A stretch of DNA of 64,000 nucleotides from Carpediemonas membranifera BICM (lineage: Eukaryota; Protista; Fornicata). The stretch spans positions 1 through 64,000 of the forward strand of contig JAHDYR010000006.1 of assembly GCA_019828565.1 (NCBI GenBank), written 5' to 3'. Under the pieces are notes generated by a model that had not been told where the DNA came from, ran no database searches, and was given only the letters and a program-made list of their open reading frames with translations. Both the position numbers and the translations under genes were made by a program. Of the stretch, positions 11,712 through 59,358 are shown piece by piece. The stretch's first letter is position 1. Each line of letters opens with the position of its first letter.

Positions 11712-13313
11712 CGGCACAGCCGTATAGACTTGACGTCAGGGTACCAACAGGTAGGAATCAGACCGAAGGACCGCAGGCTGCTCGGCTTCATGATAGACGG
11801 GCGTCCATACGCTTTCCGCGTGCTTCCATTCGGCTGGTCAGCAGCACCGTTTCATTTCCAGATGATAATGCTAGAAGCTGCTCGCCTTGTTTCGGCCCGA
11901 TGGAACGTCAAGATCGTCGTATATCTAGACGACTGGGCCTTTCTTGCGCCGAAAGACTACCTGACAAGCTGCATGCCGCAGATTGTGCGCTTTCTGCAAA
12001 ATTTGGGCTTTATCCTGAACATCAAGAAATCCCAGCTGGACCCCGCCACTGTTACCGTATTCCTAGGGATGCTGATCGACTCCGCGCGCAGAACGATATG
12101 TGTCGAGAGCAACAAGGCGCACAAGTACTCTTCGCGAATTGCCGATGCCCTAGCCCACGGCTCCTCAGCGGCCGAGTGGAAGAGGCTGACAGGCAACCTG
12201 TCCTTCGCGTCAACGGCAGTCCCGGAAGGCCGCCTCTGGCTCAGACATCTCCAGTCCTGGGAGCCCGTGGAGTCTCATCGAGTCAAGATCCCCGAGGAGC
12301 AGCGAAATGCGCTCGTCCAATGGCAGAAGCTTCTCAACAACCATACTCCACGTCCCTTGAAAGAGCTACTTTCCCTTTGGGGCACTTCCAGCAACCTGGA
12401 CGTTACAATAGCCTCAGATGCTTCGACATTCGCGGCAGGAGCTGTCATCAGCATCGATGGAACGACGAAGACAATCTCTGTACCAACGAGCACCAACAAG
12501 GACCGTCATATAACAGAGCTGGAGTTCTTCGCTGCAATGGAGGCCATCAACTTCGTTCTGCAGGAGACAGCGATCTCAGACCGAGAGATCCGCGTGTTCT
12601 CCGACTCGACAGCGGCCGTAGCTTGGATCAACAAGCAGGAATCGTCCCACTGCCCACAAGCCGTCATTACCGAGCTCCATCGCATCCTTCCAAGGCTGAG
12701 AGCCAGAGGACTGCTGCTCAAGGCGGTTCATGTGAGCGGGCACCTCAATGTACGCCCGGATCGGCTGTCACGGCTCAGCAAGGTCGATTGGTGCACGCCG
12801 CAGGTGGTCCTCGACCATATTATCGACTCTTGGGGGCCACTACAGGTGGACGTCACAGCACAGGAAGGCAAGACGCTGCAGATCGGGGCAAACCCGCTCA
12901 TGCCCCTTACTCGCGCGCAGGATGGCCTCTCCTCCCAATGGGAGGGCCTCAGAGTCTACGCAGCACCCCCGTGGGCCCTCATTCCGGCCACCCTATCGAA
13001 GCTGGCTTCCATCGCCGCCCCTTCACAGGACGGAGATCCCTCCAGCTGGTCTTCAATGGCGGTAGTGCTCGTGCCGGACATAGTTTCGGCCGCGAACCTC
13101 GCCCTCAAGCGCTTAACGCCCCACAGGCGGTACTTCCGCCTTCCTCCGGGCTCATTCGATGGGACAGAGCTACAGAAGACGGCACGGGCCGATGTCACGG
13201 TCAGATTGATGACTCTCGCGTTCCGACTGAAGCCTTTAACAGTCTCGTTGGACATCCCAGGCTCTGAGGCCTCTCAGACTCCTACAAACGCCACATCGCG
13301 GGTACTCTGGTGA
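11712..13313 (+). CDS. DIRS-type retrotransposon RT - RNase H - Dam-like methyltransferase ORF, 5'-truncated
   Basis: IDLTSGYQQ, LPFGWSAAP, YLDD, FLG (RT). SDAS, HITELE, SDS, HVSGHLNVRPDRLSR (RNase H). DGLSSQW...VYAAPPW (MT). Confidence 0.92.
   Translation, partial: RHSRIDLTSGYQQVGIRPKDRRLLGFMIDGRPYAFRVLPFGWSAAPFHFQMIMLEAARLVSARWNVKIVVYLDDWAFLAPKDYLTSCMPQIVRFLQNLGFILNIKKSQLDPATVTVFLGMLIDSARRTICVESNKAHKYSSRIADALAHGSSAAEWKRLTGNLSFASTAVPEGRLWLRHLQSWEPVESHRVKIPEEQRNALVQWQKLLNNHTPRPLKELLSLWGTSSNLDVTIASDASTFAAGAVISIDGTTKTISVPTSTNKDRHITELEFFAAMEAINFVLQETAISDREIRVFSDSTAAVAWINKQESSHCPQAVITELHRILPRLRARGLLLKAVHVSGHLNVRPDRLSRLSKVDWCTPQVVLDHIIDSWGPLQVDVTAQEGKTLQIGANPLMPLTRAQDGLSSQWEGLRVYAAPPWALIPATLSKLASIAAPSQDGDPSSWSSMAVVLVPDIVSAANLALKRLTPHRRYFRLPPGSFDGTELQKTARADVTVRLMTLAFRLKPLTVSLDIPGSEASQTPTNATSRVLW
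11900..13267 (+). CDS. 455-codon alternative frame overlapping the DIRS RT ORF, in frame with the recombinase
   Basis: ATG at 11900, same frame as 13310-14167, separated from it by a single TGA. Long overlaps are typical of DIRS elements. Confidence 0.5.
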   Translation: MERQDRRISRRLGLSCAERLPDKLHAADCALSAKFGLYPEHQEIPAGPRHCYRIPRDADRLRAQNDMCREQQGAQVLFANCRCPSPRLLSGRVEEADRQPVLRVNGSPGRPPLAQTSPVLGARGVSSSQDPRGAAKCARPMAEASQQPYSTSLERATFPLGHFQQPGRYNSLRCFDIRGRSCHQHRWNDEDNLCTNEHQQGPSYNRAGVLRCNGGHQLRSAGDSDLRPRDPRVLRLDSGRSLDQQAGIVPLPTSRHYRAPSHPSKAESQRTAAQGGSCERAPQCTPGSAVTAQQGRLVHAAGGPRPYYRLLGATTGGRHSTGRQDAADRGKPAHAPYSRAGWPLLPMGGPQSLRSTPVGPHSGHPIEAGFHRRPFTGRRSLQLVFNGGSARAGHSFGREPRPQALNAPQAVLPPSSGLIRWDRATEDGTGRCHGQIDDSRVPTEAFNSLVGHPRL

Positions 13314-14167
13314 CATTCGTCGACTTAGCCTCAACAACACCCACGGTAGAGCAGGTAGCTACCTGGGTGCGGCAGCAGAGAGCCTCCTGCAGCGAAACCA
13401 CGATCATGCGGAAGGCCCAGCTCATCATCACTCATGGGTCCGACATCTTGGGCATCCAGCTCCCTGAACACTTCCGTCCGGCCATTAAGGAGGCCGCCAA
13501 GGGCGCAGCCGGCAAGCCGATCGGTCAGGCCCCACCCATAAGACTGCCACTCTTCCACAAGGCACTGTCAGAGGCAGCCGTCTCCGGCCCCCTTCCGAAG
13601 ACGTGGGTGCAAGCCTTCGCCTTCTCACTAGTGGCCTACTCGACGACCTCAAGACCTGGCGAGATCTTCGGGTTAACAGGAGGAGACGTGAAGCCCGCGG
13701 GCGCGGGCGGTATAACGATCCGTATTCAGGCGACCAAGACTGGGAGGTCTAACGTGCTCAAGCTCGTACCGGACGTGCGGGGTCACCCGCTTTCCCCTGC
13801 GCTGTGGCTGGCCCGTCACATTCAGAACCTCCCTCAATCTGATCTGAACGAATCTATCTGGCGTGCGCCGCGTGTCGATGGCTCGCTCTCATCCACGCCC
13901 ATCTCCTTCGACCTACTTGGAGACTACATGGCTGGCGTCTTCCACAGAGTCAGCATCCGGGCTCACGGGCTTAGGCGCGGCTCAGCCGCCGACCTAGTCC
14001 TGGCTGGCGTTTCCCCTTACGTAGTCGCAGCCAAGGGTACATGGGCCGATATCAATTCGATGCTCCGGTATATTGACGACACGATGAGACTTGACCTCGC
14101 GACGTCCGCCAAGTGCTTCACACCGCTCATGGCACAAGGGCTGCCAGACGAGATCAAGTTCGAATAA
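13268..14167 (+). CDS. Tyrosine recombinase of DIRS-like element
   Basis: Catalytic R (TSRPGE), K (ATKT), HxxR (HGLRRG), W (GTW) and Y (MLRY) are all present. Confidence 0.92.
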   Translation, partial: GLSDSYKRHIAGTLVTFVDLASTTPTVEQVATWVRQQRASCSETTIMRKAQLIITHGSDILGIQLPEHFRPAIKEAAKGAAGKPIGQAPPIRLPLFHKALSEAAVSGPLPKTWVQAFAFSLVAYSTTSRPGEIFGLTGGDVKPAGAGGITIRIQATKTGRSNVLKLVPDVRGHPLSPALWLARHIQNLPQSDLNESIWRAPRVDGSLSSTPISFDLLGDYMAGVFHRVSIRAHGLRRGSAADLVLAGVSPYVVAAKGTWADINSMLRYIDDTMRLDLATSAKCFTPLMAQGLPDEIKFE

Positions 14168-31433: not shown

Positions 31434-31517
31434 TCTCTCGAACGTGCAAATTGTTGCAGACATAAACTGCACAATGAAGAACTGAAGTCTGCTATAGACG
31501 ATTGAGAGTTACTTTAC

Positions 31518-33175
31518 TGCTTGCACTGTGCACTCTATGATACTTCATTACCCCTTCCCGCTCTCCCTTCCTTCTTCTTGAGAGTGATATTTCGATAGTC
31601 TGTCATCATCGTCGGGGGTCATCAATCAGTGCTTCTCCAGTCCTCTCGCCAAGCAACTAGCTTCCCACCTATCGTCTACCCCATCTTACTTCCATCCGCT
31701 CTCTTCTGCTTGTCGGATTTCGGGGTCTTGATCATGACGTCTTTGCAATCATCACCATGGCCTTCCATCGCACAGCGGGCTCTTCTATGCCGCTGCCTGA
31801 AGATAAAACACTTCAGTTCTTCTAATTCTCGCCATTATCACTGCATAGTCTCGTTCATTAAACGTCTGTCGTCTTTGATGTGTGTTGTTAACAAGTGATC
31901 GGTTCATTCACCGCAAAACGCAGAGCTTCACATGACCAGCATCTATACGGTCAAGTTCTCCATATCCTCCATTCTCCATAACCGTAGAAACGTGATTCCT
32001 TTCATCGCGGACTTCTACGCCGGATTGGAGAACAGGCTCTGCTCGTTCACGAAGGCCAAGTACTTTCACACTTGCCTTCTGTCATACATCGCCGCGTGTT
32101 GCCACCACGCCAATCTCTCCTTGCCCGTGCATGACCAGGCTCTGCACCAGGCCATCGTTATCGTCGCCTACCGACGAAGTGGAGAGTACCGAAACCTCGC
32201 CGCCGACTCACTCGTCGACCGCTTCCTGGGCGCGAAAAAATACGCCGCAGTTCGGCAGGTTGTCACCTCAATAGCCGAGATGCCACTGTGGCATGACGAG
32301 TTCATCATCCGCCTCAGCACAGCCCTCAGGGCAGCTCGTCGACAGTGCCCTCGCGAGTTCGACGTGTGGGTACAGCAAGACCCCCAGCTTCGCGTTCGAT
32401 ATGACTCCTGCGTCATTCAAAAGCACAAATCTAGATAGTCTACAAAACTCAGTTAGGTTTGTGCTCCTCCACGAGCAGGAAATATTCGACGCTGGGATGG
32501 TCAAGAGCTTCCGCAGAGTGCGCCTGACGAACCACATCTTGCGCCAAAAGCACTTCCACAGAGCTGGGGAGCAGCTTGCTCGCACCCTAGGCTGGACTCC
32601 TCGGCGACTCCCTCGCGGTATTGCCCCTCCCCGGGCAGCCCCCACCAGGCTGGTTGTCTTCTACGGAAGCGCTAGATTCAAGACGCCCCGTCGGGTGCAT
32701 CCATGCGCGCCGTATGGTCGCCTTGCTACCTTACTACCATCATGAGAGCTTTCAACATCACTGCTGAAGTGCGGATGACTAACGAGTTCCGAACCTCACT
32801 CGTCTGCCCCTTCTGCCGCGCGAGGTTCCGTAGAACTCGCTACACGAGGCGCACGATGCGATGCCACAACCCGAATTGTCAAGGTGCTCCATGGTACAGA
32901 CAGCAACGCCTCAATTCCGATCCTACTACCACCACTTGGCTCAATCTCTCCCATAGAGACAAGACTGCTGCACAGAACATCGTGGATTGCGGCCTCATGA
33001 CGGATGCACAGTATCAAGCCAGTGCTTTCAGAAATCCAAGACCTCCAGCCCGTCTTCCCAACTATAACCCCAATACACCAATTACGGCTAACCAGCCGCT
33101 AGTCTTCGCCTCCGGGCAAGCTAATTGAAGTGGAGAGACGCAGTGCTTGCACTGTGCACTCTATGATACTTCATT
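31518..33175 (+). mobile_element. Fanzor1-derived element A (internally deleted) with 32-bp flanking direct repeats (31518-31549, 33144-33175)
   Basis: Three frames give an N-terminus (IYTVKFS), SFKST...RRVRL..HI.RQK...VVFYGSARF...AP, and NEFRTSLVCPFC...C..C...RDKTAAQNI. No RuvC-I DPG motif is seen. Confidence 0.85.
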
Positions 33176-35857: not shown

Positions 35858-36167
35858 ATTTGTCTGTCGTCGGATTGTACGCGCACTTTAGCCCACAGGA
35901 CGAAGAATTTGTCCGCTCAAGCCTGGGTGCAGGAAGGGCAGGCTAGTCCATCTCGTTACCCACGACTGCAAGGGGAAATATTGTGCAGTTTTAGGTTTAA
36001 GGAGAGTGGTATTTAGAGGGTTTATGTGGAGGATTCATGTAAAGGTGACTTAAGCTGTCGACCCCCCTGGGATGAACTCCAGAGGACTGAACAGGTTCAG
36101 TCTGACGGCCCACCTGTCGTACACCAGAAGGGAAGAAGGGTAGCGGAAATGAGGGCGTCGGCGATTG

Positions 36168-36941
36168 TTTAGACTCAACAATTCTAATCATGCGCAGCAC
36201 ACTACCTCCACTCACCCACTTCAGCCCTCGTCTGTACTATCGGGCTTTCGTGCTTTCAGTCGTCGGTCTGCACGAAAAGATGCGTCGTCTGTCGTCCATC
36301 GTCTGTGTCGAACGCTGCTGTCTTCTTTCGCGTCTGTGCTCGTCTGTTACGCGCTCATCTGTCGTCCATTGCCGGCGTCTGAAGCTCATGTCGTCGTCGT
36401 CTTCGTCTGTTGTGAGAGACACTAGTGGTGGAAAGCGGTTGTAGCTAGTAGTAAAGACGCTTTGTGTTGTATGATGCTGGTTTCTTGTGTTTTGAGGGAT
36501 GCTGCTAGCTGATGAACCCTGAAAAGAAATGATCGATGCAGGCAGCTCAATAGACTCCGATGCCTTCCAAGATATACACGGTGAAGGCTTCCGTTAACAA
36601 GGCCATTGGCGAGATTAACGGTGGAGGCGATAACAACGCGCCGCGGCGAGGAAATCTTGAACCCGGCATGCGTTCTTTCACGCAGGCTAAGTACACATTC
36701 ACTTGCCTGCTTGCGTGCGTCTCTGCATCTGCGCACGCGTTGACCCCACGAGGACGGTCAACCTGTTCGACCAGGAGGTCCTCAAGCAGATCGTCAGCAT
36801 TGCTCAGCAAAAGGTGTCGAAGGCAAAGGCAGCGGATTGGTGCAGGTGGATTGGCGACCTGGCGATGTGGAGGGACCCTGACATATGCTGCTTGGATCAC
36901 TGTGTGTTTTGGACTCAACAATTCTAATCCTGCGCGGCACA
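36168..36941 (+). mobile_element. Fanzor1-derived element C (N-terminal fragment only) with ~34-bp imperfect direct repeats (36168-36201, 36908-36941)
   Basis: MPSKIYTVKAS...FTQAKYTFTCLL...LAMWRD aligns with elements A and D. The repeats differ at 3 of 34 positions. Confidence 0.75.
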
Positions 36942-36948
36942 AGGAGAG

Positions 36949-38088
36949 ATGACGGACGTTCTCAGAGCCATCGCGCTCAGTCCTCCTCCGAATGTTGAGG
37001 GAGATAAGGTTATAATCTCTGAAGAGTCTTTCGATTCCTCTGCACAGCTTTCTATTGCCACTGGAGGCAAGGTGTTTTCCTTCACTCTTGCTCAACTCGT
37101 CCAAATTTGCGAGCACATCCGTAGTTTCGTCAAAGAGAATGACATCACCGCAGAAAATGTAGCTGGCAAGCGTTTTATCTTGTACAAAGCTCTTCCAGCA
37201 CCTCTGAAGCTGTGTACGGACGCCAAGACACTCGCCCTCCTCGGCCAGCTGCTTCTCACACCCGAAGCTCAAGTAGACGGCGTACTTGCCCAGTTCTCGA
37301 TCAAGGACACCACAGTCTCCCCTATTGTCGGCGGGCTGGAGCGGATCCCTGTGGCGCACATCACGAACCTCACGGAGTTCATCGACGACCTCCTCGACAG
37401 TCTGCCCTCGATCATAGACACTATGAACGGACCCGATGCTCGTGTGGCCAAGATGCTTGCCCGCACCGCACTGCCCGAGTCGATTGGGAGTTACATGCAC
37501 GTCAATAAGGACTACAGCACCATTCTTCAGCCCCCCGCTCAACCTGGCCAGAAGAAGCCGACACCCAGGGCTCCCCCGAAGGAAGTTGCGGCCCCGGAGC
37601 TGGCAGGGCGACCCATCATTGTGGTACCCCCCGTGTGCAACTCAATGTTCAACATCCTCAACGCTGCTACGATCCTGTCCTCCGGCAAGTTCATCCCTGC
37701 GACCAGTGACACCCAGCCCGCCTATATAATCAAGCACGGCTTCCCTGGGTCGAGACACACAGCCCGGTTTGAACTCTGCGACTCCCCAAAGTCACTCGCA
37801 CCCGAGGCGTGGAGCAGGGTTGTCGCTGTGTTCGCGGTGGGTCAGGCATGGCAGTTTAGGGGATGCAAGGCAGGGTACGGTGACCCGACGTTCCTCTTTA
37901 GCAACAAGCCGGGCTTCCACATTTGTTCGGACGTCCACAAAGTGTCTGCTCAGATTCGCTCTTGGAATGTCAAGCTTATATCCACTAGCACGCTCGGATT
38001 GACTGACGGCTTGAACGAGTTCTGGAACCGGGTGCAGCAGGAGATGGCCCGTAACCCCGCGTTCGCACAGAAGAGGGAGGGGCGGTGA
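36949..38088 (+). CDS. CDC73: Cdc73/parafibromin (Paf1 complex)
   Basis: PIIVVPP, WSRVVAVFAVGQAWQF, WNVKLI. Confidence 0.9.
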   Translation: MTDVLRAIALSPPPNVEGDKVIISEESFDSSAQLSIATGGKVFSFTLAQLVQICEHIRSFVKENDITAENVAGKRFILYKALPAPLKLCTDAKTLALLGQLLLTPEAQVDGVLAQFSIKDTTVSPIVGGLERIPVAHITNLTEFIDDLLDSLPSIIDTMNGPDARVAKMLARTALPESIGSYMHVNKDYSTILQPPAQPGQKKPTPRAPPKEVAAPELAGRPIIVVPPVCNSMFNILNAATILSSGKFIPATSDTQPAYIIKHGFPGSRHTARFELCDSPKSLAPEAWSRVVAVFAVGQAWQFRGCKAGYGDPTFLFSNKPGFHICSDVHKVSAQIRSWNVKLISTSTLGLTDGLNEFWNRVQQEMARNPAFAQKREGR

Positions 38089-41290: not shown

Positions 41291-41461
41291 TGGACGTTGA
41301 TTGGTATTTTATACGCGGAAGCAATAATTAGGTTACTATCTTGAGTAAAGCTCTCTCTAGACGGTTGCACGTCGAGCTACAAGCTTTGGACATACGCTAG
41401 GGTCAACACAGCCAATTACAGACCAGTAGGGCTGTTTACTGCTTGGGGATGAGGCACAAAA

Positions 41462-42741
41462 TGTTGCGCAGTATTAATATAAACACATTGTTCGAACCTC
41501 CAGACAGGGCCTGAAAGGACCGATCAAAGTGCCAAACTGTACAACATCATCCGTCCGTAGACGAATGTTGGCGGTTAGCCAATTGATGATACTGGAATGA
41601 TGTTTGAAGGCGCGGGATCGATGTGCGACTGAACGGAGAGCCACTGAGCTCATCTTCCGTGGCAAGAGAACGCCACAGGATGTTTTCTGCAGCACTCTTG
41701 TCCCGATGATCAACATTCAGAGCGGACGGAGCCTCGGCATTATTGGTCCCGAGACGGGGGCCCTCTTTCTCCCGCCCTTTCGCTCGCTTTCGAACAGGCA
41801 TGCTCGCATCATGTTGTGGCCGATAGCGGCCGAAGCCTCTCTTAATAGTCACCGCCACACAGACCCCATCGGTGCTCAGGCTGAGCAGACGGCCCATTGA
41901 CCTGGGGTTGTCCCGGTAGCGTCTTTTCTGCTCTTCTGTCAACGGATTGGTGGCGTGTGGGAGTGCGTGATTAATTCCCACACGATGACAGAAACACCTG
42001 CGAGAGCTTCTTCGAGTCGGGCGAGGGTGCCCTGTAGCCTGTCACGGTACGTCGTCACCGTGCGGGCGAGCCACAGCTTCACAGAGTTGGCGTATCGGGT
42101 GAACCACTTCCGGAGACTGGTACTCACTCCAAGCAACGCCAAACGACCTTTGAGCTGCGCGACCAGATCCTGCGTGGTAGTCTCCCGCCACATCGGCAGA
42201 GTGTCGAGCGACTGCACGATGGCCGCGTAGGCCTGACCCGGCTGACCGCCGCGTACATGTGTGAGCAGTCCGTTGTGGAAGTCGGCGTCATGTAGGGGGA
42301 GTTGCCGGCGCTGCGCATAGCATTCAACCGCGAGCCGGGCCAGCAGGCATGAGTAGAGATATTTTGCTGCGGCGTAATCCCCCACTCTCCGTTCTTCGGT
42401 GTAGTTCTGTCTGAAAGCTTGCTTGATGGAGGCTTTGATCGTATATACCTCCATCTTGTTGCGCACTACAGGTGTGCAGCTGGTCATTGATGAAGATGTC
42501 ATATAAGAGCCGACGATGAACACCATTACCAGCATATACAAGTGTAGAAGTGAATTTAATGTGGAATAGAAGACAATGAGACGACGTGTGAGCGATTGTG
42601 ATGTTTGCAGTTGTACTGACGTCCACGAAGAAGACGCTTTGTGGAAGCCCTGGAGAAGACGATCTCCCTACCGACTTAAGACGTGAGTAGGAGGGAGACA
42701 GGGCAGTGTTGCGCAGTATAAACACATTGTTGGACCCTTCA
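41462..42741 (-). mobile_element. Fanzor1-derived element D (large internal deletion) with imperfect ~35-bp direct repeats (41462-41502 incl. 6-nt insertion; 42707-42741)
   Basis: MEVYTIKAS...AKYLYSCLL...LPLHD...PMWR, WED motif STDGVCVAV, and RuvC-III HRDKSAAENI. Confidence 0.8.
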
Positions 42742-42789
42742 ATTGCACACAAAAATTGACCTTAACCTGCGATTTTCTGGAAATCCGAG

Positions 42790-45493: not shown

Positions 45494-47782
45494 TCAGTAC
45501 TTAGGGTACTGCGGCCCCACCAACGAGTTTGCCATCAACAGGGCGACTAGAGCAAAGTATGTGAGCGAAAAGACGCCCATTGGTACCACCCAGGCAATAA
45601 CAACCTTGCCAACAAGAGTGGAGATGAGTGTGCAGGTGCAACCAAGCAACACAACGATGAATCCCGCAAACGGCATCATTAACGCACACTTGATCGTCAG
45701 GGGCACCTCGAACTGAAGCACTGACAACTCTGGCACGGTGGAGTCCACAGAGTTCACACCTACTAAATAAAGCACGAACCCCACGATCACGCTGCCAACC
45801 AGGATGAACTGTGTGCTCACTGACAGCCAGTGCACCACCAGGGACCAGTGAACGGGGCTCACGGGACGTTCGGGGCCAGTGCTGGGCTTCGGCTTGAGCT
45901 CCTCGCCGTCTGCTCTCGCTGGCTGGTGGAATTCGCTCAAGTCATCGCCTAAGTCGTCGTTTGGGCGATGATCCCTTGCTCCAACGGGCCAGTCGTCTGA
46001 GTCGGGGTTGAGTAGTGTCGCGTGTTGGTCATCGTCGATTGGATCTTCAAGATCTGCGTGATCTTCGTCAAATCTATCCATAGGCTGACTTGAGCACATC
46101 ATGACATGAGAGTTGCCAAAGATACCCTTGGTGGCTTGCTTGCCGTCAAGGAGCGAGCGGAGAGATCTTGGCCGGCGGTCCTTTCTATACGCGAAGAGGG
46201 CAAGCACTGCGTTGAAGGGCGCCTCAAGGCATGCAACGGCGAATACCGAGCAGCAGCAACCGATGCCAAGGAGGGGGTTCGCCGCTAGACTGACGAGTTC
46301 GAGAGATGCGATCGAGAAGGATATGTAGCCGGAGTCCATGTCGATAAATGTAAAGGTGGTCTCATCGGGCTGGGGTGTTTGATTGGACCACACGATCGGA
46401 TCAAGATTTGATTGAATCAAAGGTCCAGATTTCAACATTAGGTTGCCATCCTTAGTATGGAGGAAAGACATCGAGCTAAACTTGAGAATTGGGGCGAGGA
46501 AGTCGTAGTGCGATATCCTGCAGTTTCGAACACTAGCAACGGAGAACCACCCGAACGGGGAAGATGACGAGAGCTTCTCGCGGTCGACAACGGGGTCCGG
46601 CACGTTCTCATTGAGGAAATAGGAGCTGAAGTCCTGAATGAAGGCCGTCCGCAAGATGCTGGCTCCGTTGGTGTTGAGGATAAACCCGACGTTATTCTGC
46701 ACATTGAAAGCAAAACGCGAGTGCGAGCCCGGGAAATCTCCGTCGTGTACTGTCCAATCATTCCAGTTGCTCTTGACCTCGTAGAACTGGAGATCCACGC
46801 CTGGGACGTATGATACGTTCGCCGCCTTCCATAGTGGTCTGTGCATCCGCTCGGCAAGGTTGGATGAGATGATGGTGGTGCCTGTAGTGGGGTTGGTACC
46901 GTTATACATATGTGCAAGTAGGAACTTAAGTAAATCATTGGCGTTAGAGTACAAGTTGCCTGCTGGCGCGAGGTTCCAGGCTGGGTGATAGTCCGATTGG
47001 TAACCAAAGGACGGCTGGTACTGCGCCTTGCTTATCCTGGTCTCGTCGAGCTCCCAGTAGTTGAAGGAGGAGCTTGTCATCCCGAGAGGTTCAAAGATCT
47101 TGGTCTTGGCAAGAGATTCAAAGTCACCATCGCGCAGCTTCTCTACAATGTAACCGAGCAGAGCAACGCCGTGGTTTGAGTAGCTGACCGTCTCCCCTGG
47201 CTTGCGGATAATGGGAGGAAACCAGTGGGTGATGAAGTTACCGAGCTTGACCTTCTCGCTCTCGTCATGAATGAAAAGAGAGAGTACAGACTCGTCGATG
47301 CCCGCGGTGTGCGTCATCAGCTGCCACACCTCAAGTTCCTGCCGCTTGTGGCTGCAGAAAGAGGGGATATACTGGCAAATACCCCCATAACGATAGAACA
47401 ACGACGACGACATCGACGGAACCACGTCGAGAACCCGGGAGTCGAGGTCAACAAGGTTGTCCTGTACGCACTGCAAGAACATCGTGGCGGTGACGATCTT
47501 ACTGATGGAGGCGCATGGGAAGATAGTATCGGTGGTGAAAGGTACCTCGACCTTGGAGCCCCCTTCCGTCTTCTGGTAGGCAGAACCGAAGCCACTGCTG
47601 TATAGTATGGTCGTATCCTGTACGATTGTGAGAACACCGCCGCTCCAGACGTGATCATGGTCATTCTCTGTCTGTGAAGCAAGCCAACTCTCGGCCCAAG
47701 CAGAAACTGCATCCACAGAAAGTTCTACACGACAAAACGCTAATGCGACTAAGATTAGCACGCATAGCAGTGTTTTGAGCAT
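45494..47782 (-). CDS. Beta-lactamase-family (S12) serine hydrolase with signal peptide and C-terminal TM helices
   Basis: SxxK (ASISK), LMTHTAG, YSN, PLGM, HDG. Signal peptide MLKTLLCVLILVALAFC. Confidence 0.88.
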   Translation of the reverse strand: MLKTLLCVLILVALAFCRVELSVDAVSAWAESWLASQTENDHDHVWSGGVLTIVQDTTILYSSGFGSAYQKTEGGSKVEVPFTTDTIFPCASISKIVTATMFLQCVQDNLVDLDSRVLDVVPSMSSSLFYRYGGICQYIPSFCSHKRQELEVWQLMTHTAGIDESVLSLFIHDESEKVKLGNFITHWFPPIIRKPGETVSYSNHGVALLGYIVEKLRDGDFESLAKTKIFEPLGMTSSSFNYWELDETRISKAQYQPSFGYQSDYHPAWNLAPAGNLYSNANDLLKFLLAHMYNGTNPTTGTTIISSNLAERMHRPLWKAANVSYVPGVDLQFYEVKSNWNDWTVHDGDFPGSHSRFAFNVQNNVGFILNTNGASILRTAFIQDFSSYFLNENVPDPVVDREKLSSSSPFGWFSVASVRNCRISHYDFLAPILKFSSMSFLHTKDGNLMLKSGPLIQSNLDPIVWSNQTPQPDETTFTFIDMDSGYISFSIASLELVSLAANPLLGIGCCCSVFAVACLEAPFNAVLALFAYRKDRRPRSLRSLLDGKQATKGIFGNSHVMMCSSQPMDRFDEDHADLEDPIDDDQHATLLNPDSDDWPVGARDHRPNDDLGDDLSEFHQPARADGEELKPKPSTGPERPVSPVHWSLVVHWLSVSTQFILVGSVIVGFVLYLVGVNSVDSTVPELSVLQFEVPLTIKCALMMPFAGFIVVLLGCTCTLISTLVGKVVIAWVVPMGVFSLTYFALVALLMANSLVGPQYPKY

Positions 47783-48023
47783 TATTCGCGATCGTGTCCT
47801 CGAATGTCTCCACTCAAAGTCCGGGATTTGATCGATCTCATCCTCGATGCCGGATTGGTATGAACGAAGAACGGCGATGTGTGCCCTCTCGTTAGTGCTC
47901 GGCGGCAGAAATTGAGGCAGATGGCTTGGGACTGCTGGCGAAGTCGACTCAAGGGACGGATTTAACAATGCGACAGTTATATAGCGTGTATATCACGCAT
48001 ATGTAACAAGTAAACGACTCAGG

Positions 48024-51000
48024 TCAGGTCAAATGGGTCTGGACGAGGTGGAATGCGAGAGCGAAAGACTGGAGTCGCTTCAACCGACGAGAGAAGAGCC
48101 ATGCGAATGTAGCACACGCGGATACGATCATGTACAGCGCGCCGAAGAAGACAATGTATCCGAGAACGAGCAGCACGCCCGACACCCTCTGCGCCCTTCG
48201 CCCGAACTCGGCATCGAGGGCCTCAGACAATTCGATGATATGTGCCGCCGACCTTCTATGTGCCTCGGTAGAGAGGGCGTCGCTGTTCTCGTACTTTGGG
48301 GCGATTTCCGTGAACATAGTCATGTCGGCGTGATAAGCTGCGAAAAGAGTGGGAATGCGATCAACGTCGAGGCCTGAAGCAGTATAGGCGACGAACGGGT
48401 TGTCCCATGCATTGGCGTAGAGCGAGGGGATGTCCCTGGCGAGTGAGGCCAACGACCGTGTGACCGGGGAGACGTCTCTCTCGATGGGGCTTCCCGTGTC
48501 CGCCACGATCGCCTGGCTTGCCCCTGCCAGAGCTACGGCGTTCAGCGAGGCTACATCGATCAAGTTTGCGTTCATTCGGAGAATTGCGATGTTACCGATA
48601 AAAACTACCGCGAAGGCCGGCAATGTCAGCATGGCGTATAGCGCCACCACTCGCACGCATCCAGACAAGAGCGGCCGAAGAGTTCCCGCGAGGTCGCTGA
48701 CCCGCTTCTCCTGGTGCCTCGAGAACCCCCGATGGGCCGTGCCGATGAGGATACCGGGAATGACGATGGCGACGAAGATGACAATCGGGACGAGAGCGAA
48801 GGCGAAGACCACCGCCTGCCTGTTGATCGAGATGACCGTTGAACACCACGCAACCGTCCGCGCCGCCCTGTTCCGGGCCATCGTCTGCATATCCTGCGCG
48901 GCATCCAGCATACGTCCCATATCAGACGCGATGATCTTGTCCGATAGTACAAGATCCCAAGCCATACCGAGCTTCGTCGAGTCGGGGAGGGTCAGGTCGA
49001 ACGTAGAGTTGGTGAATCTGCCCGTATCTCGCTCTCGACCGCTCAGGACATCCCACGTGACAGTACTGAATGTCGTGTCGTCAGGGTCGTGAACCGACAC
49101 GGCTAGCCGGGCTGCTACGGTTGCAGCGGTGTAGATACCTTCAGCATGACTGAGGAAAGTTTCGCCAATGGTGTTGTGAGCGGCGAGCAGGATCTCAAGC
49201 TCGGCCAATGCGCGTGATGTATGTGTCACCGCGCTTTCCGAACCGGTGGCGACCACTCGCTGTGTGTGGTATAGTGCATCACTCGTGACAGCGATAATAT
49301 GGGCGAGGGATGTCCTTTCTTGAGCAATATCTAGAAAATCTGAGTCAATTTCAAGATATTCAGCACCGACAATTAGCCCTACTTCAAACACGAGGTGACA
49401 CAGTACAATTGCTGCGACAGTGAGCAGACCCGCGTTGACAGTTTGACCAAGCCGACGCTCGGGCCAGACTACGTTGAGAAGAACGAAAATGGCGGCCACG
49501 AGGAGCAGCTGAACTACAGGCGGGGCAACAAGCATGGCGAAGTCGAGGGTCAGGCTTCTGTCGATGAGCGACTCCGTCTCGGCCTCGAGAGTGTCAGCGA
49601 GACCTTTGAGGGCGGCCACCCCCGCCTTGAGCCAGTCGGCCTGCTGCTGGTCATAAACAATGGCCTGGGCGATGGCGAGCTGGGTCGTGCTGTTGAGGGC
49701 AAGATCGTAGGCCTTGTCGCTGTACCAGAGCGTCCTGCCGAACCGCTCGCTCCTGATCTCGCTCGAGCCCTCAGCGGAGTAGTTCCACGCAAACCCGGGG
49801 ATGTCAACCGATGCCAGACCGTACCCCTGGCCGGCGAGGATGACAGCGATAATGTGGTCATGGCGTCTGCGGGACATGTCCTCGATGAACCGGGCCATTG
49901 ATCGTCCAGAGCCGATGGAGGGGATGACGTGGTTCACCTCTATGGCCTTGTCGATAGCATCGCCAAACGCCTTGATATCCACATATTTGAACGAATCATA
50001 GGATCCCTTGACGAATCTGGGGAGGTGGAAATCTATCAACGCCTCGGTCTTGACAAGCGGCGCGATGTCGACCTCCATATGATCGCCCAAATCAGCCCAG
50101 CGGGCCTCGCTCCATGAACCGTAGCGTCCGGTGAGACCGAGACTGAGGCAGACGGCAGAAATGGCGACAGAGACGACTGCCAGGGCTGTGGCAACGACGA
50201 TGAGGCCGGGGCGACCAAGCCCGACGCCCTTGAGCCTGCGGAAGCGGTATTTGAGGGCTGCAGCAATACCAGAACTTTGCCTGGCACGTGGGTGTGCAGG
50301 GCGTCTGATCGCGGCGTCGAGTTCAGACATTGAACCATCAGAATCGGCACGCGAGGCACTAGTGTCACTATCCTGCACTGCGGCAATAAATCCATCAAGA
50401 TCCGATATATCCAACTGCATCTCCTCCAGCCCAATCAGCGGGTCAAACAAGGACACCTCGCTAGAGCTGGTGCTCGACTCAGAACCAGACTCGGGTGCGA
50501 TGTGGACGATCTCATCGGGGGTGTCGGCAAATACGACGCGTCTGGCCCCGGTGCCAATGGGCGTGGCCTGCATATCTCCCATCATGCTGTCGTCAGCGCT
50601 GTCGGGGAAGTCTTTGATGGTCCCCTTGTTCTCACCGTTGCCCGCGGCCTGGTCCTCCATCGCCTCAGGGGTGAAGTGGGCGACGTCTGGTCGATAGCCG
50701 TCGTCGTCAGCGAGGGTGATGTCCTTGAAGCTTTCCCGAGCTATGAATGTCAGTCGAATCTTCCTCCGGATTTGTATATCAGATACGAGAAGACAGCGTC
50801 CGACAACATCGTCGCAGTGCTTGGTAACTGAAGGAAACAGCTGCGTGTTGAGCCAGAAGGCAAGCGAAGTCAGCGCGGCGATCTCAGCAAGAATAAGGAG
50901 GAGGAAAAGAACCGCGATAAAGGCGATGGCTGAACTCATGTTGCTGTAGATGGCGCCGAGGAGAACACGGAATGCAGGCAGGAGCATACGGGCTCCATTG

Positions 51001-54000
51001 AGACTGAGAGAGTGGCTCGTGGCGTCGTCAGACACACCAGAGTCGAGAACATGTTGTAACGCGTCCTTGACCGCACTAGTGAGTGTGGTAAGTGAGGAGG
51101 AGGCAACCGAGAGTGTCACAGGGCATGTGTCATGTGCGATGAACACCAGGCTGCTTAGATCCATGGTTGATTCGACCGCAAGGAGATCGTCTTCGATATT
51201 AGATATGGTGGCGATCGCCGAATCAAGAGTACTCGCGATATCAGGCCATCCATCAGAGAAGTAAGAAGAAGAGTCGTTCAACTGTGTCGCGAGTGCCGCC
51301 AATGTGCCAAGATGTAACGCGTGTGACGCGTCATGGACGATCTCGACCTGTTCCATTCCGAACTGATGGATGAAAACGAGCATGCCAAGGATGCACCCGA
51401 TGAGCACCTGCAAGAGGACGACAAGCGCAGTGAATGTGAGTGAAACGCGTATAATGCGCACTGGGCCTCGCATGTGTTCCTTGGTTGATATGGCAGCTGT
51501 GGCCACTGATCCAACAGAGGAGACGGACGTGGGGGCGGTCGATGGTGAGGACTCGGAGCTGCTGGACTCGGACCTCATTCGCTGGGCGGCCGCGTGGTCT
51601 TGCAGGACAGTGTCGAGGAACAAGCAGTACCACTCGGCGACGAGTGGGTCAGCAGGGTTACGGCGGTGGAGGGCCGAGTACAGGGCGTTCGCTTTGAGCG
51701 CGCTCTTGCCAACACTTTGGACCAAGGTCGTAAACTGCACAATGTTCATCTGGCTGGCGAGGACGACAGGCCAAAGCTTGCTCATTCGTACGAGGGTCCG
51801 GAGGTGCTGCTCCCGTGCGTCTGCCAGCATCTTCTGTGTGCTAAGGTAGGCCGACGCCTTGTCCTCGCCGTCTAGCGCATGGATGAACTGCATGTGCTCG
51901 ATGTACGCCTCGATCCCGGTCACCATGATCCTGTTTGACGGTGTCATTTCAGTGAAATAGTCCATTTTGATTATCTCCCACATCTGTTGTGCCGAGTCAA
52001 TCATATCTGGGACCTGCACCCCGAATTTGATCTGGGCCATCCTGAGAGCGATCGTGGTCCGGCTGTCGTACTGAGCGCAGGCCTGTCTGAAGATCTTGAG
52101 CGCCAGCTTGACTGTATTGGCGCGCTGAGTGGCACAGCTAGGCCCAGCCGCCTCGCCCAGGCCATTACCATGGGCGACCACACCCCTGTAAGCACACAGC
52201 GGTCTTGTTCCGACCTCTATAGTCTTCACCGAGAGCCCCATGAGATCGGCCCGTCCCAATGTGGCTGGGGGGTTGAGTGCCAGCTGCTGGATGACGGCGC
52301 TCCTTGCCTTGGGGTGGAGTACTATGGTTCTTAGCACGTCGATGGGGCGGGTGCATATGTGTCCGTCGCCGAGGATGACTGCGAATACGAGTTGTTCGCA
52401 GTACCGGATGCGGAGGAAAGTGAGATACGCTGAGAGTGGGATAATGGCGCATGATACAGCCCCAACGAGGGCGAATAAGAAAGCAAGGGGGGTTGAGTCG
52501 GATGTAACGACCAGCTGAGCGAATGAAAGCACCGACACAAGCCCGCATGAGATCATTGCTGAGACCATTGAGGAGACCGCAACGACAGAGCCGATCGTGT
52601 TGATGGGGGTATTCGTAAATGTCGCCAGAGCCCTGTTTCCACTTACAACCGCCCCAATGAAACCAACTATGGCTGCGTAGAACAGGAAAGTGAGCCTATC
52701 CTCCTCGTCTTCTGTGCCCAAGTCCTTTGCCCCAAGACCAACTGCGGCCCCAAGCAACACCTGGCACACCATGGTTGATATTGACACACTCAGCCACTGG
52801 GAAGGGTATAGCGAGTACCACACTGGAGGCGAGTTGACCGCTGCAGAGTGGATGATGTTGTACCAGAGGCCAAGGGATAGGAGCAGTAGGCTGGTGATGG
52901 TCAGGATGATGACCTGAATGACGGAGGAGGGCGAGGGCGAGGTGTCGGCGAGGAATCGGTAGGCTGGGGCGAGGGCAAGATAAACCCCTACAGATGCATA
53001 AATAGGCACGAGGACAACGTAAATGTGGACAATCGACCCCATCCGGAGTACTGGACGAAAGAGCTTGACGGTCTTAGCGCGCCTCGTCCTGGCAGCATGG
53101 AAGGTGAGCAAGAGCGGGAGGAGGACGAATGCAGAGACGAACGCCCAGGACACTACGGGGGTGGTGTATGGGCCAATCACCGCACTCGAAGCTGGTATAA
53201 AAATGAGCGACAGATGGTCATAAACTGCGCGGAAAGCTGCACTATGGGAAGCAGCACAAGCCAGGCCTGCGATAAAGGGCATGATAACACTATACATGAG
53301 CAGCACCATTGCCGCCGGGGTATTCCACGGTCTCGTCTTCCTGTGTGGGTCGAACAGAGCCTCGTGGAGATGCTCTGCCCAGTCCTGCCTGTCCTTGGCC
53401 TGTAGCAGCTGTTGGGTACGTTCCCTGACTGCTTCTGACCTCAGCTGCTGTCTGCGGACGTTGTTGATACTCGCCTGCTCTGTCAAGAACTGGCTGATAG
53501 CGAGGCAGGCCTGACCAACGAGGTCAAGCTGGGCTGGAGTCAGCCTCCGTGTATTCCTAAACATATTAGCCGCGTCCTCAATGTCAACACCGGCCTCAGT
53601 TGCCATTTCCCCGATAAGTTCGTCCACATCCGGGCTTGGCGAGGCGGAGGTAACTCCCCCCACGCTGATCACGCCGAGGGCCGCACCGTCAAGATGTATG
53701 GCAGACGCGCACTCGGACATGAGACCACAGGGGCAGGATCCAACGAAGTATCTGCTTGCTGCCATCGTGGTGTGCGTCTGGCGATGGGCACCGCAAAACA
53801 CAATGCCGGGACCGAGACCGGCTTTCAAAGTTTGGCAAATGGGTGCGTCAGGATATTCGATCGTGATGGCGTTGCTTGCTGTGTCATAGATGGTCGCATT
53901 GACGCCATATGTGCTGCTAAACTTGTCGAGAAGGGCGTTGAGGCGGGAAACATCAAAGAGCCCGGAAATCGTTGTTTTGGACATCAGAGAACCTGCTTTG

Positions 54001-54155
54001 ATCATTTCATCGTCAAAAACAAGCCACCGGGCAAGCCTGGGTAGCTCTTGTCTTAGTTCTGTCGGTGATGAAGCGCTGCGAGAGAAAATACTACCCAAAA
54101 CTGTCTCGAAGTCATATTCTTGGTCTACAAAAGATGTGCTTGATGTAGTATCCAT
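48024..54155 (-). CDS. ~2040-aa polytopic membrane protein: N-terminal PocR-like sensor + TmcB-like region
   Basis: LLDKFS..YGV...C...CPCGL.ECASAI.LDG.ALG.I..GGV is PocR-like. Many TMs follow. YSALHRRNPADPLVAEWYCLFLDTVLQD matches the TmcB-type TPR motif. Confidence 0.75.
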   Translation of the reverse strand: MDTTSSTSFVDQEYDFETVLGSIFSRSASSPTELRQELPRLARWLVFDDEMIKAGSLMSKTTISGLFDVSRLNALLDKFSSTYGVNATIYDTASNAITIEYPDAPICQTLKAGLGPGIVFCGAHRQTHTTMAASRYFVGSCPCGLMSECASAIHLDGAALGVISVGGVTSASPSPDVDELIGEMATEAGVDIEDAANMFRNTRRLTPAQLDLVGQACLAISQFLTEQASINNVRRQQLRSEAVRERTQQLLQAKDRQDWAEHLHEALFDPHRKTRPWNTPAAMVLLMYSVIMPFIAGLACAASHSAAFRAVYDHLSLIFIPASSAVIGPYTTPVVSWAFVSAFVLLPLLLTFHAARTRRAKTVKLFRPVLRMGSIVHIYVVLVPIYASVGVYLALAPAYRFLADTSPSPSSVIQVIILTITSLLLLSLGLWYNIIHSAAVNSPPVWYSLYPSQWLSVSISTMVCQVLLGAAVGLGAKDLGTEDEEDRLTFLFYAAIVGFIGAVVSGNRALATFTNTPINTIGSVVAVSSMVSAMISCGLVSVLSFAQLVVTSDSTPLAFLFALVGAVSCAIIPLSAYLTFLRIRYCEQLVFAVILGDGHICTRPIDVLRTIVLHPKARSAVIQQLALNPPATLGRADLMGLSVKTIEVGTRPLCAYRGVVAHGNGLGEAAGPSCATQRANTVKLALKIFRQACAQYDSRTTIALRMAQIKFGVQVPDMIDSAQQMWEIIKMDYFTEMTPSNRIMVTGIEAYIEHMQFIHALDGEDKASAYLSTQKMLADAREQHLRTLVRMSKLWPVVLASQMNIVQFTTLVQSVGKSALKANALYSALHRRNPADPLVAEWYCLFLDTVLQDHAAAQRMRSESSSSESSPSTAPTSVSSVGSVATAAISTKEHMRGPVRIIRVSLTFTALVVLLQVLIGCILGMLVFIHQFGMEQVEIVHDASHALHLGTLAALATQLNDSSSYFSDGWPDIASTLDSAIATISNIEDDLLAVESTMDLSSLVFIAHDTCPVTLSVASSSLTTLTSAVKDALQHVLDSGVSDDATSHSLSLNGARMLLPAFRVLLGAIYSNMSSAIAFIAVLFLLLILAEIAALTSLAFWLNTQLFPSVTKHCDDVVGRCLLVSDIQIRRKIRLTFIARESFKDITLADDDGYRPDVAHFTPEAMEDQAAGNGENKGTIKDFPDSADDSMMGDMQATPIGTGARRVVFADTPDEIVHIAPESGSESSTSSSEVSLFDPLIGLEEMQLDISDLDGFIAAVQDSDTSASRADSDGSMSELDAAIRRPAHPRARQSSGIAAALKYRFRRLKGVGLGRPGLIVVATALAVVSVAISAVCLSLGLTGRYGSWSEARWADLGDHMEVDIAPLVKTEALIDFHLPRFVKGSYDSFKYVDIKAFGDAIDKAIEVNHVIPSIGSGRSMARFIEDMSRRRHDHIIAVILAGQGYGLASVDIPGFAWNYSAEGSSEIRSERFGRTLWYSDKAYDLALNSTTQLAIAQAIVYDQQQADWLKAGVAALKGLADTLEAETESLIDRSLTLDFAMLVAPPVVQLLLVAAIFVLLNVVWPERRLGQTVNAGLLTVAAIVLCHLVFEVGLIVGAEYLEIDSDFLDIAQERTSLAHIIAVTSDALYHTQRVVATGSESAVTHTSRALAELEILLAAHNTIGETFLSHAEGIYTAATVAARLAVSVHDPDDTTFSTVTWDVLSGRERDTGRFTNSTFDLTLPDSTKLGMAWDLVLSDKIIASDMGRMLDAAQDMQTMARNRAARTVAWCSTVISINRQAVVFAFALVPIVIFVAIVIPGILIGTAHRGFSRHQEKRVSDLAGTLRPLLSGCVRVVALYAMLTLPAFAVVFIGNIAILRMNANLIDVASLNAVALAGASQAIVADTGSPIERDVSPVTRSLASLARDIPSLYANAWDNPFVAYTASGLDVDRIPTLFAAYHADMTMFTEIAPKYENSDALSTEAHRRSAAHIIELSEALDAEFGRRAQRVSGVLLVLGYIVFFGALYMIVSACATFAWLFSRRLKRLQSFALAFHLVQTHLT

Positions 54156-54370
54156 CTTCAATGGCCAAACTTCCTCTTCAGCTCCTTCCACCACTGAATT
54201 TGGTGGAGAATTTTTGAATGCGCCATATTTCCATCATATCTCGAGATCCGGCAGAAGATACAAAACTGCACATCTCCCCTTCCCTTCGAATCTACAGCCC
54301 CTCCCTGCCCGCCAGCCGACCTCGCACCCAGACCCAACCCGACCAAATCACCGAGTCTCAAATCCACTCT

Positions 54371-56932: not shown

Positions 56933-56991
56933 TCTGACGCGTCTTTCGACCGGGTGTTTAAACTGCGGGTTAATGAATCAGACTTTACTTT

Positions 56992-57217
56992 TTTTCAGCT
57001 TCAGCTTTCCGCGCCTCGAACTCCTCGCGCTTCAGAGTATCGCCATTGCCTCTGTAGCCGAGCTCTACGAGCTGCCTGGCCATGTCTTGGTCGTCGAGGT
57101 AAAACATGTCCGTGGTGGTGATCTGCGAGTCCAGATACTCATCATATGTGTTGAACGCAAGCGCTATAGTATCAATATATTGTTCTCACCGTAGTCAAAT
57201 TGAACGTTGTCGCCCAT
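56992..57217 (-). pseudogene. 5' fragment of CFAP299, duplicated with element A and frameshifted
   Basis: Near-identical to 31210-31433, with an extra AT near 57179. Truncated at a T-run. Confidence 0.9.
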
Positions 57218-57301
57218 TCTCTCGAACGTGCAAATTGTTGCAGACATAAACTGCACAATGAAGAACTGAAGTCTGCTATAGACGATTGAGAGTTACTTTA
57301 C

Positions 57302-58945
57302 TGCTTGCACTGTGCACTCTATGATACTTCATTACTCCCGCTCTCCCTTCCTTCTTCTTGAGAGTGATATTTCGATAGTCTGTCATCATCGTCGGGGGTC
57401 ATCAATCAGTGCTTCTCCAGTCCTCTCGCCAAGCAACTAGCTTCCCACCTATCGTCTACCCCATCTTACTTCCATCCGCTCTCTTCTGCTTGTCGGATTT
57501 CGGGGTCTTGATCATGACGTCTTTGCAATCATCACCATGGCCTTCCATCGCACAGCGGGCTCTTCTATGCCGCTGCCTGAAGATAAAACACTTCAGTTCT
57601 TCTAATTCTCGCCATTATCACTGCATAGTCTCGTTCATTAAACGTCTGTCGTCTTTGATGTGTGTTGTTAACAAGTGATCGGTTCATTCACCGCAAAACG
57701 CAGAGCTTCACATGACCAGCATCTATACGGTCAAGTTCTCCATATCCTCCATTCTCCATAACCGTAGAAACGTGATTCCTTTCATCGCGGACTTCTACGC
57801 CGGATTGGAGAACAGGCTCTGCTCGTTCACGAAGGCCAAGTACTTTCACACTTGCCTTCTGTCATACATCGCCGCGTGTTGCCACCACGCCAATCTCTCC
57901 TTGCCCGTGCATGACCAGGCTCTGCACCAGGCCATCGTTATCGTCGCCTACCGACGAAGTGGAGAGTACCGAAACCTCGCCGCCGACTCACTCGTCGACC
58001 GCTTCCTGGGCGCGAAAAAATACGCCGCAGTTCGGCAGGTTGTCACCTCAATAGCCGAGATGCCACTGTGGCATGACGAGTTCATCATCCGCCTCAGCAC
58101 AGCCCTCAGGGCAGCTCGTCTACAGTGCCCTGGCGAGTTCGAAGTGTGGGCACAGCAAGACCCCCAGCTTCGCGTTCGATATGACTCCTGCGTCATTCAA
58201 AAGTACAAATCTAGATAGTCTACAAAACTCGGTTAGGTTTGTGCTCCTCCACGAGCAGGAAATATTCGACGCTGGGATGGTCAAGAGCTTCCGCAGAGTG
58301 CGCCTGACGAACCACATCTTGCGCCAAAAGCACTTCCACAGAGCTGGGGAGCAGCTTGCTCGCACCCTAGGCTGGACTCCTCGGCGACTCCCTCGCAGTA
58401 TTGCCCCTCCCCGGGCAGCCCCCACCAGGCTGATTGTCTTCTACGGAAGCGCTAGATTCAAGACGCCCCGTCGGGTGCATCCATGCGCGCCGTATGGTCG
58501 CCTTGCTACCTTACTACCATCATGAGAGCTTTCAACATCACTGCTGAAGTGCGGATGACTAACGAGTTCCGAACCTCACTCGTCTGCCCCTTCTGCCGCG
58601 CGAGGTTCCGTAGAACTCGCTACACGAGGCGCACGATGCGATGCCACAACCCGAATTGTCAAGGTGCTCCATGGTACAGACAGCAACGCCTCAATTCCGA
58701 TCCTACTACCACCACTTGGCTCAATCTCTCCCATAGAGACAAGACTGCTGCACAGAACATCTTGGATTGCGGCCTCATGACGGATGCACAGTATCAAGCC
58801 AGTGCTTTCAGAAATCCAGCCCGTCTTCCCAACTATAACCCCAATACACCAATTACGGCTAACCAGCCGCTAGTCTTCGCCTCCGGGCAAGCTAATTGAA
58901 GTGGAGAGACGCAGTGCTTGCACTGTGCACTCTATGATACTTCAT
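57302..58945 (+). mobile_element. Fanzor1-derived element B, near-identical copy of A; direct repeats 57302-57332 and 58915-58945
   Basis: Same three frames as A, with a few SNPs and a 9-nt deletion near 58818. Confidence 0.9.
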
Positions 58946-59358
58946 GAATCAGGACCACGAGTGGACGAATCAAGGGCAATTGAGTGTCGCCTATTCGCCA
59001 TAAGCATGCGATTAATGCTCGGGATGGGTGGCGATGGCAATCTCAGACGATGGCGGTGCTGCTGCCTCGGTCTGGGGGATCGATGACTGTTTGTGGACGT
59101 CTATTGAATGGTGTGGAATGGCCTATATTTCTGGATATTAGGCGCGTGGTAGGTGATTTCAGGTGTCGCGACGAGTCTATTTATGATGGAGTCAGATGAG
59201 TCGGAACCGAGACACACGAGCACTGGGCCTGGCATCATGGAATAGGACGTACAACGTGAGTAACACGGCTCATCAGCTTGCATCCTCCGTTTGACCAACG
59301 AGCCAGCTCACGTATGGATCCAACGACATGCACACCCTCACACCCAACCCACGAACAC

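Follow-up and report, generated by a model that had tools for sequence, protein, structure and literature searches.

Decayed Fanzor1 genes as probable antisense cargo of non-autonomous LTR-type elements in Carpediemonas membranifera

Non-autonomous LTR retrotransposons of the TRIM and LARD types have TG...CA ends, a target duplication of 4–6 bp and a polypurine tract, lack pol and also occur as solo units, while CACTA/EnSpm transposons have CACTA/G ends and a duplication of 2–3 bp. A 2026 review reports no retrotransposon-encoded Fanzor. Fanzor1 nucleases, which are characterized by a Gly at the RuvC-II Glu position and a relocated Glu (PMC10530073), are carried by the Helitron2 elements CRe-1/2/3. 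Full-length CRe-1 has no target duplication, inserts after TTTT and has ends in common with Helitrons (PMC3627910). The premise of the first-pass annotation of the DNA described here, that Fanzor carriers duplicate 0–10 bp, is too narrow, as the duplications of CRe-1/2/3 measure 7–19 bp and some 44–443 bp (PMC3627910). Replitrons have repeats of 6–11 bp and an RG target, with a duplication that is variable or absent, and encode a Rep (PMC10288648).

The window, i.e. the whole stretch of DNA analysed, comprises 64,000 nt of Carpediemonas membranifera BICM (contig JAHDYR010000006.1) and contains the four loci A, C, D and B. C. membranifera is a free-living flagellate. The four related Fanzor-like remnants and the motifs listed for them in the first-pass annotation are present in the sequence. 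As far as their sequence tells, A/B, C and D belong to three high-copy Fanzor1 families and are dead copies that carry deletions. RuvC-I is missing from all four window copies and present in longer copies elsewhere in the genome: A and B have in common a 785-bp deletion that removed TDG and RuvC-I, C retains the N-terminus alone, and in D a deletion joins TDG to RuvC-III. B is not an independent locus; it is a 98.8% copy of A together with approximately 290 bp of A's left flank, and reads as a daughter of A. The features of the four loci are as follows.

31463..31470, plus strand: target motif of locus A, host promoter-like, TAAACTGC; the target duplication begins 7 bp past the motif
Approximately 40 bp from the locus A target motif, opposite strand: start of CFAP299
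31478..31482, plus strand: expected 5-bp target copy left of A, AGAAC, unmatched at A's right end
31483..31547, minus strand: full terminal unit of family A, 65 bp, TG...CA, 3' LTR-like in the minus-strand reading; its distal 20 bp are of type T1 and its final 30 bp (31518-31547) are the repeat
31548..31575, minus strand: polypurine tract adjoining the A full unit, 93% purine
31932..33128, plus strand: dead Fanzor1 gene A, with the 785-bp deletion near 32360-32369 and, as second lesion, a frameshift near 32730; VVFYG, NEFRTS, the zinc finger and RDKTAA are retained
33144..33173, minus strand: short end of family A, 30 bp, TG...CA, a truncated 5' LTR-like unit and the fixed end in all copies
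35984..35992, minus strand: target motif of locus C, in reverse orientation, 7 bp from the duplication
36000..36004, plus strand: 5-bp target duplication of C, AGGAG; other copy at 36942-36946
36005..36201, minus strand: full terminal unit of family C, approximately 197 bp here versus 38–90 bp in solo forms, with a promoter motif inside; a 5'-adaptor-tagged contig begins at the unit's end
36560..36894, plus strand: family C Fanzor remnant, N-terminal part, frameshifted
36905..36941, minus strand: short end of family C; its motif is now 23 bp upstream of the host CDC73 ATG
41457..41461, plus strand: 5-bp target duplication of D, CAAAA; other copy at 42750-42754
41462..41502, plus strand: short end of family D, carrying a 6-nt insertion
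41550..42454, minus strand: family D Fanzor remnant, with N-terminus and TDG, then a deletion up to RuvC-III
42678..42706, plus strand: polypurine tract of D, 82% purine
42707..42749, plus strand: full terminal unit of family D, 43 bp, TG...CA
42763..42771, plus strand: target motif of locus D, 27 bp before a kinesin ATG and 8 bp from the duplication
56959..56981, plus strand: target of B, consisting of motif, 7-bp spacer and 8-bp duplication (56974-56981; other copy at 58945-58952)
56982..57266, minus strand: A-locus flank carried into B, with the CFAP299 promoter and 5' part, sense on the minus strand; it finishes as A7 followed by 7 bases matching the terminal unit
57267..58944, plus strand: element B, with the same deletion as A, full unit at 57267-57331 and short end at 58915-58944

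The window also holds two LINE-like elements with endonuclease and reverse transcriptase (1-2823 and 7671-9674; 72% alike, in opposite orientation), a DIRS-like element with reverse transcriptase, RNase H, a weak adenine methyltransferase match and a tyrosine recombinase (11730-14167), a beta-lactamase-fold protein (45494-47968) and a protein of 2056 aa containing PocR and TmcB-type domains (48024-54194). At 36905-36949, the promoter motif given by the C short end may keep CDC73 expressed.

The assembly (24.24 Mb, 69 contigs) was searched with a C-terminal Fanzor piece, the pieces being used separately rather than as a mended gene, and 285 candidates were matched. Among those listed, approximately 50 were 85–100% identical and approximately 100 more 40–54% identical, and the candidates split into three families corresponding to A, C and D. 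Longer copies with RuvC-I, for which the first-pass annotation had proposed to look, were found in all three families, with the RuvC-I Asp in GFDPG; every near-full copy read has a stop or a frameshift. In alignment with outside relatives, the RuvC-II position is Gly (VFYG/VAYG) and the relocated Glu precedes the zinc finger (NEFRTS/SEFRTS/NEDRTT), while the zinc finger and RuvC-III residues C442, C461, C466 and D493 are invariant in alignment A4. A profile reached three outside proteins (E 8e-7 to 6e-4), one of which matched SpuFz1 (E 4e-4). With four bridging proteins added, the joint profile matched Fanzor1 structures at E 1e-14 to 9e-11 and Cas12f at 1e-3; a single sequence used without a profile reached no better than E 0.14, to Cas12f. 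A language-model search agreed with the Fanzor1 assignment, and an AlphaFold model built from a 10-sequence alignment reached a pLDDT of 38.5. Pfam gave no match on the long Fanzor ORFs and a single sub-threshold zinc-finger match on the C-terminal piece. The Fanzor1 call is borne out by the motif alignment and the profile matches to three Fanzor1 structures, and the proteins are best classed, by sequence, as divergent Fanzor1.

Sequence-level counts refer to 39 merged loci, mostly of family A, together with the window; C and D are represented by few full loci. The direct repeats described earlier are real. The C pair (36168-36201/36908-36941) has 3 mismatches, and the D repeat is 35 bp with a 6-nt insertion in one copy; the A pair (31518-31549/33144-33175) stands as a pair but not at 32 bp, since it measures 30 bp and the last two matches are chance. 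The repeats do not bracket the elements as had been thought, for shared sequence extends past the left repeat to a TG end by 35 bp in A, approximately 160 bp in C and 8–9 bp in D. Nor does each locus have a repeat of its own: the repeat is family-specific, that of A being the same across the 39 loci, at 22 long (left) ends and 28 short (right) ends. Similarity breaks off sharply after ACTTCA at the 28 right ends and continues for 35 bp to TGAAGT or TGAGGT at the 22 left ends; the true element ends are TG...CA. A separate target duplication lies outside them, of 5 bp in C (AGGAG) and D (CAAAA) and of 8 bp in B, and at locus A no right-side match to the 5-bp target copy was found. In 12 copies having both ends the duplication is 5 bp; in 6 others, whose long end is ragged, it is 6–12 bp. 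Terminal units are also found free of the cassette. This holds for the 65-bp A unit in 11 of 40 scored matches, whose flanks lay outside the view; solo C and D units, each with its own 5-bp duplication, were seen directly, and the D end has 265 occurrences in the genome. Because the 30-bp repeat recurs at approximately 40 unrelated loci, it must be element-encoded; this option of the first-pass annotation agrees with the recurrence of the repeat at dozens of unrelated sites, the 5-bp duplication and the terminal units free of cassette. The imperfect inverted ends noted inside the repeats exist as purine-rich and pyrimidine-rich ends and fail as element ends: since the true ends lie outside them, they are better read as a polypurine tract opposite the Fanzor strand than as CACTA-type ends. 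A mobile unit bounded by CACTA inner ends was rejected, as the CACT-like words lie inside the element and the true ends are TG...CA with 5 bp duplicated.

Read against the Fanzor gene, the order is short end, antisense cargo, purine tract and full TG...CA unit. In each of the three families a purine tract adjoins the full unit (93, 79 and 82% purine; top 0.1–1% of windows), and the opposite end is made of the first 30–35 bp of the full unit, i.e. the 'direct repeat'. This layout is most simply that of a non-autonomous element of LTR type in which the first LTR is missing its distal part and the primer site. A test for two equal LTRs came out against them, one end being the first 30–35 bp alone, and neither a TGG-type primer binding site nor a U5 follows the short end. 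Unequal LTRs and the missing primer site mean that the element works like a TRIM or LARD, yet is not a canonical one.

Of 23 intact A left ends, 22 have the TGC of a motif, WAWMNTGCR, at a distance of exactly 12 bp (20 of 21 once A's two daughters are dropped), against a background of 0.003 per position. These 12 bp consist of a 7-bp spacer with free bases and the 5-bp duplication; target bases −1 to −6 show no conservation. C and D have the same motif 7–8 bp off in reverse orientation, and insertion is oriented relative to the motif. WAWMNTGCR is found 20–40 bp before many window gene starts in either orientation (51 intergenic matches versus 21 expected), and a divergent host ORF starts 34–79 bp away at 13 of 21 A sites. 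Two contigs of run X4 open with a tag that is a published 5' RNA adaptor (PMC3061055), one starting 9 nt before an A left end and the other at the end of a C unit, both 4–8 nt downstream of the motif. On the basis of these two tagged contigs, the motif fits a core promoter element. The repeat was considered as a seed-matching guide choosing targets and rejected, as the motif does not run on into repeat-like sequence. At L025:793-840, a hairpin-like piece of 44 bp that has TG...CA ends and a 5-bp duplication at motif+7 is perhaps another small family with the same target.

The A unit has a distal 20-bp tip of one of two types, T1 and T2. When tips were compared with cargo, leaving out rows of fewer than 800 aligned bases (3 of 24), mean cargo distance was 0.0254 both within and between tip types. 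Tip type changes six times on the cargo tree, all six changes being forced by supported branches, and shuffled labels gave a mean of 6.1. Three sister sets that are 0.3–0.5% apart differ in tip type. In the C26 and C9 pairs, every member has its own 5-bp duplication and the part of the unit nearer the repeat tracks the cargo, placing the exchange point approximately 20 bp from the tip. This point lies approximately 11 nt past AGTAAA, and the host CFAP299 tail begins 11 nt past TGTAAA. Intermolecular first strand transfer is known in retroviruses (PMC5651808), and the tip exchange is as expected if such a transfer used helper strong-stop DNA in trans. TGTAAA precedes the CFAP299 poly(A) site by 11 nt and was also seen just past the CDC73 stop.

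Domain searches of the genome showed Ty3/gypsy elements to be abundant (716, 577 and 848 candidates). One Ty3/gypsy-like element (L041:1-1330, minus strand) has a 96-bp LTR, a gag-protease ORF and, where a primer site would lie, a 10-bp palindrome. It faces a family A copy head to head, and behind that copy comes one of family C, an arrangement that is one of repeated insertion at one site. The end of the gypsy LTR equals the last 9 bp of A and its start the last 11 bp of C; as the C tip matches the LTR start and not its end, the strand assignment of tips is not uniform. A homolog search with the neighbouring gag found zinc knuckles alone, and genome tip-pattern searches found no helper with an LTR match longer than 9–11 bp. 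T1 tips at G000:C13:711523 and 716974, 5451 bp apart in the same orientation and away from the Fanzor purine tract, form a candidate helper, while the T2 tip gave 15 matches and no LTR-like pair. Among the matches listed (150 of 577–848 candidates), no tip or repeat pattern flanks integrase or RNase H. A 130-bp piece present in a small A sub-lineage precedes a gag-protease ORF elsewhere. A short A remnant fused to a gag-protease leader was seen at L029:1430-3336, and the 130-bp piece in three other small A copies. The far end of B consists of CFAP299 sense sequence, A7 where the gene has A4, 7 unit-matching bases and an 8-bp duplication at motif+7; the transcript data are strandless contigs. 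Two A copies on different contigs (L014 and L056) have 330 bp of right flank in common and different left flanks, indicating flank carry-over or recombination between copies.

The data presented above have led us to propose a model, which we regard as probable, whereby non-autonomous LTR-type elements are moved by resident Ty3/gypsy machinery and the Fanzor1 gene is antisense cargo; one end appears to be borrowed from a helper retrotransposon at each move. The element would be transcribed against the Fanzor gene and packaged by the helper. Having no U5 or primer site at its 5' end, it would use the minus-strand strong-stop DNA of the helper or of a co-packaged RNA, which would jump to the element's 3' R region. 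Plus-strand synthesis would begin at the purine tract, and in the second transfer the 30–35 bp repeat would stand in for the primer site, rebuilding the precise short end together with a full unit that has a newly acquired tip. Integrase would then insert this product with a 5-bp duplication beside a promoter-bound factor. Failure to acquire a proper tip would yield a ragged end with a 6–12 bp duplication, deletion between repeats would give solo units, and transcription of the Fanzor mRNA would start from the promoter motif and run the opposite way. Against the LTR-type reading stand the lack of identical LTRs and of a primer site, the many internal deletions, which are also compatible with DNA gap repair, and the absent right-hand duplication at locus A.

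These internal deletions, with both ends retained, would also suit DNA transposons with an integrase-type DDE transposase (Ginger2/TDD-like), in which a Fanzor cassette entered a short TG...CA element, duplicating 30–35 bp, and the composite of element and Fanzor now moves by cut or copy and paste. The 5-bp duplication is in keeping with such a transposase, as are the TG...CA ends, which in family A match each other over 6 bp in inverted orientation, and excision would supply Fanzor's usual purpose (PMC13565253). We nevertheless hold it to be unlikely, as it leaves unexplained why a purine tract adjoins the full unit in each of three families, the tip exchange between sisters and the oligo(A) end of B, and no such gene was found next to any copy.

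The ragged ends invite comparison with HUH-type copy-paste, by a Helitron2 like CRe-1 or a Replitron-like element, or with breaks cut by Fanzor and patched by alternative end joining. One fixed end and ragged others with longer duplications recall CRe-1/2/3 and Replitron-1, flanks are captured, the short end has a hairpin, and the genome, from which NHEJ is missing, contains helitron-like and geminivirus-like Rep genes (PMC8516963). Full-length copies, however, have exact 5-bp duplications, unlike full-length CRe-1, which inserts after TTTT and shows no duplication. New sites could not be chosen by a guide encoded in the flank, target bases −1 to −6 are unconserved, and the Rep and helitron genes are reported to be unexpressed (PMC8516963). 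This route therefore seems quite unlikely.

The elements could also be LTR-like in every other respect and have had their tips swapped by recombination between two carrier RNAs or inserted copies, with no helper DNA. This would account for the occurrence of both tip types mostly on carriers and solo units; it is very unlikely, as the terminal 20-bp tract has no homology beyond it for gene conversion and a carrier RNA would have no known primer site to start from. The first option of the first-pass annotation, a transposase making staggered cuts of 30–35 bp, can scarcely be credited and is already refuted for current transposition because the repeat is identical across unrelated loci, the real duplications are 5 bp and solo units occur, each repeat being itself bounded by TG...CA with an adjoining purine tract, even if the family-own repeat sequences could be frozen ancestral duplications.

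What the Fanzor contributes to such an LTR-type element is a separate question. No conserved base stands beside the insertion site, so a normal TAM is missing, though a flank-encoded guide would match the empty allele. A repeat-encoded guide would target the element's own full unit, and the few scars in the repeat argue, by inference, against self-cutting. Our best guess, a tentative one, is that the nuclease converts empty alleles using a TAM that is distant or relaxed. The gene is just as likely to be decaying as passive cargo, since the near-full copies read all have a stop or frameshift. The 3' region 32990-33173, a candidate omega RNA, folds with a z of −1.55 versus shuffles, and contigs cover it without ends. 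A fuller proposal would have primer-site-free 'half-LTR' parasites take helper strong-stop DNA every cycle and carry an active homing Fanzor, the promoter motif 7–15 bp from the guide match serving as distant TAM and empty alleles being converted without excision; we consider this combination doubtful.

An LTR-type carrier of Fanzor appears not to have been described yet. Our literature search found no paper linking Fanzor with Carpediemonas, and none on this way of parasitising reverse transcription, through asymmetric ends and tip exchange, features that point to a distinct mode of doing so. With an LTR-type chassis carrying three families, each Fanzor1 family or all together running to hundreds of copies, it would become possible to test clearly whether excision is a precondition for Fanzor action. 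Insertion at a fixed place next to a core promoter motif suggests a promoter-targeted integrase and gives a first handle on the promoters of this lineage.

In comparison with the Fanzor1 nucleases of known structure (SpuFz1 8GKH, PpFz1 9CF0, GtFz1 9CER), the Carpediemonas proteins have the same TDG, RuvC-I DPG, RuvC-II Gly with relocated Glu, zinc finger, RuvC-III RD..AA.NI and length of approximately 660 aa. They differ in being very divergent, with approximately 20% identity to the nearest outside proteins, in having insertion points without adjoining conserved bases usable as a TAM, and in being carried by something other than a known DNA transposon; every copy read is broken. Like the Helitron2 elements CRe-1/2/3 (PMC3627910), the carriers contain Fanzor1 only, have one fixed end and include truncated copies with longer duplications (7–19 bp in CRe-1/2/3) and captures; unlike CRe-1, they have a 5-bp duplication, TG...CA ends, a terminal repeat, a purine tract and a motif 7 bp off. 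Terminal direct repeats, oriented insertion and flank carry-over are shared with Replitrons (PMC10288648), whereas the carriers lack Rep, have repeats of 30–35 bp and show no dinucleotide bias at the site. Ty3/Tf1-type targeted integration likewise places its products at a set distance from a promoter element. TG...CA ends, the 5-bp duplication, the polypurine tract, solo terminal units and the absence of pol are those of TRIM and LARD elements, from which the Carpediemonas elements differ in their unequal ends, one without its distal part, their lack of a primer site, a tip apparently acquired in trans and a cargo that is an antisense nuclease gene.
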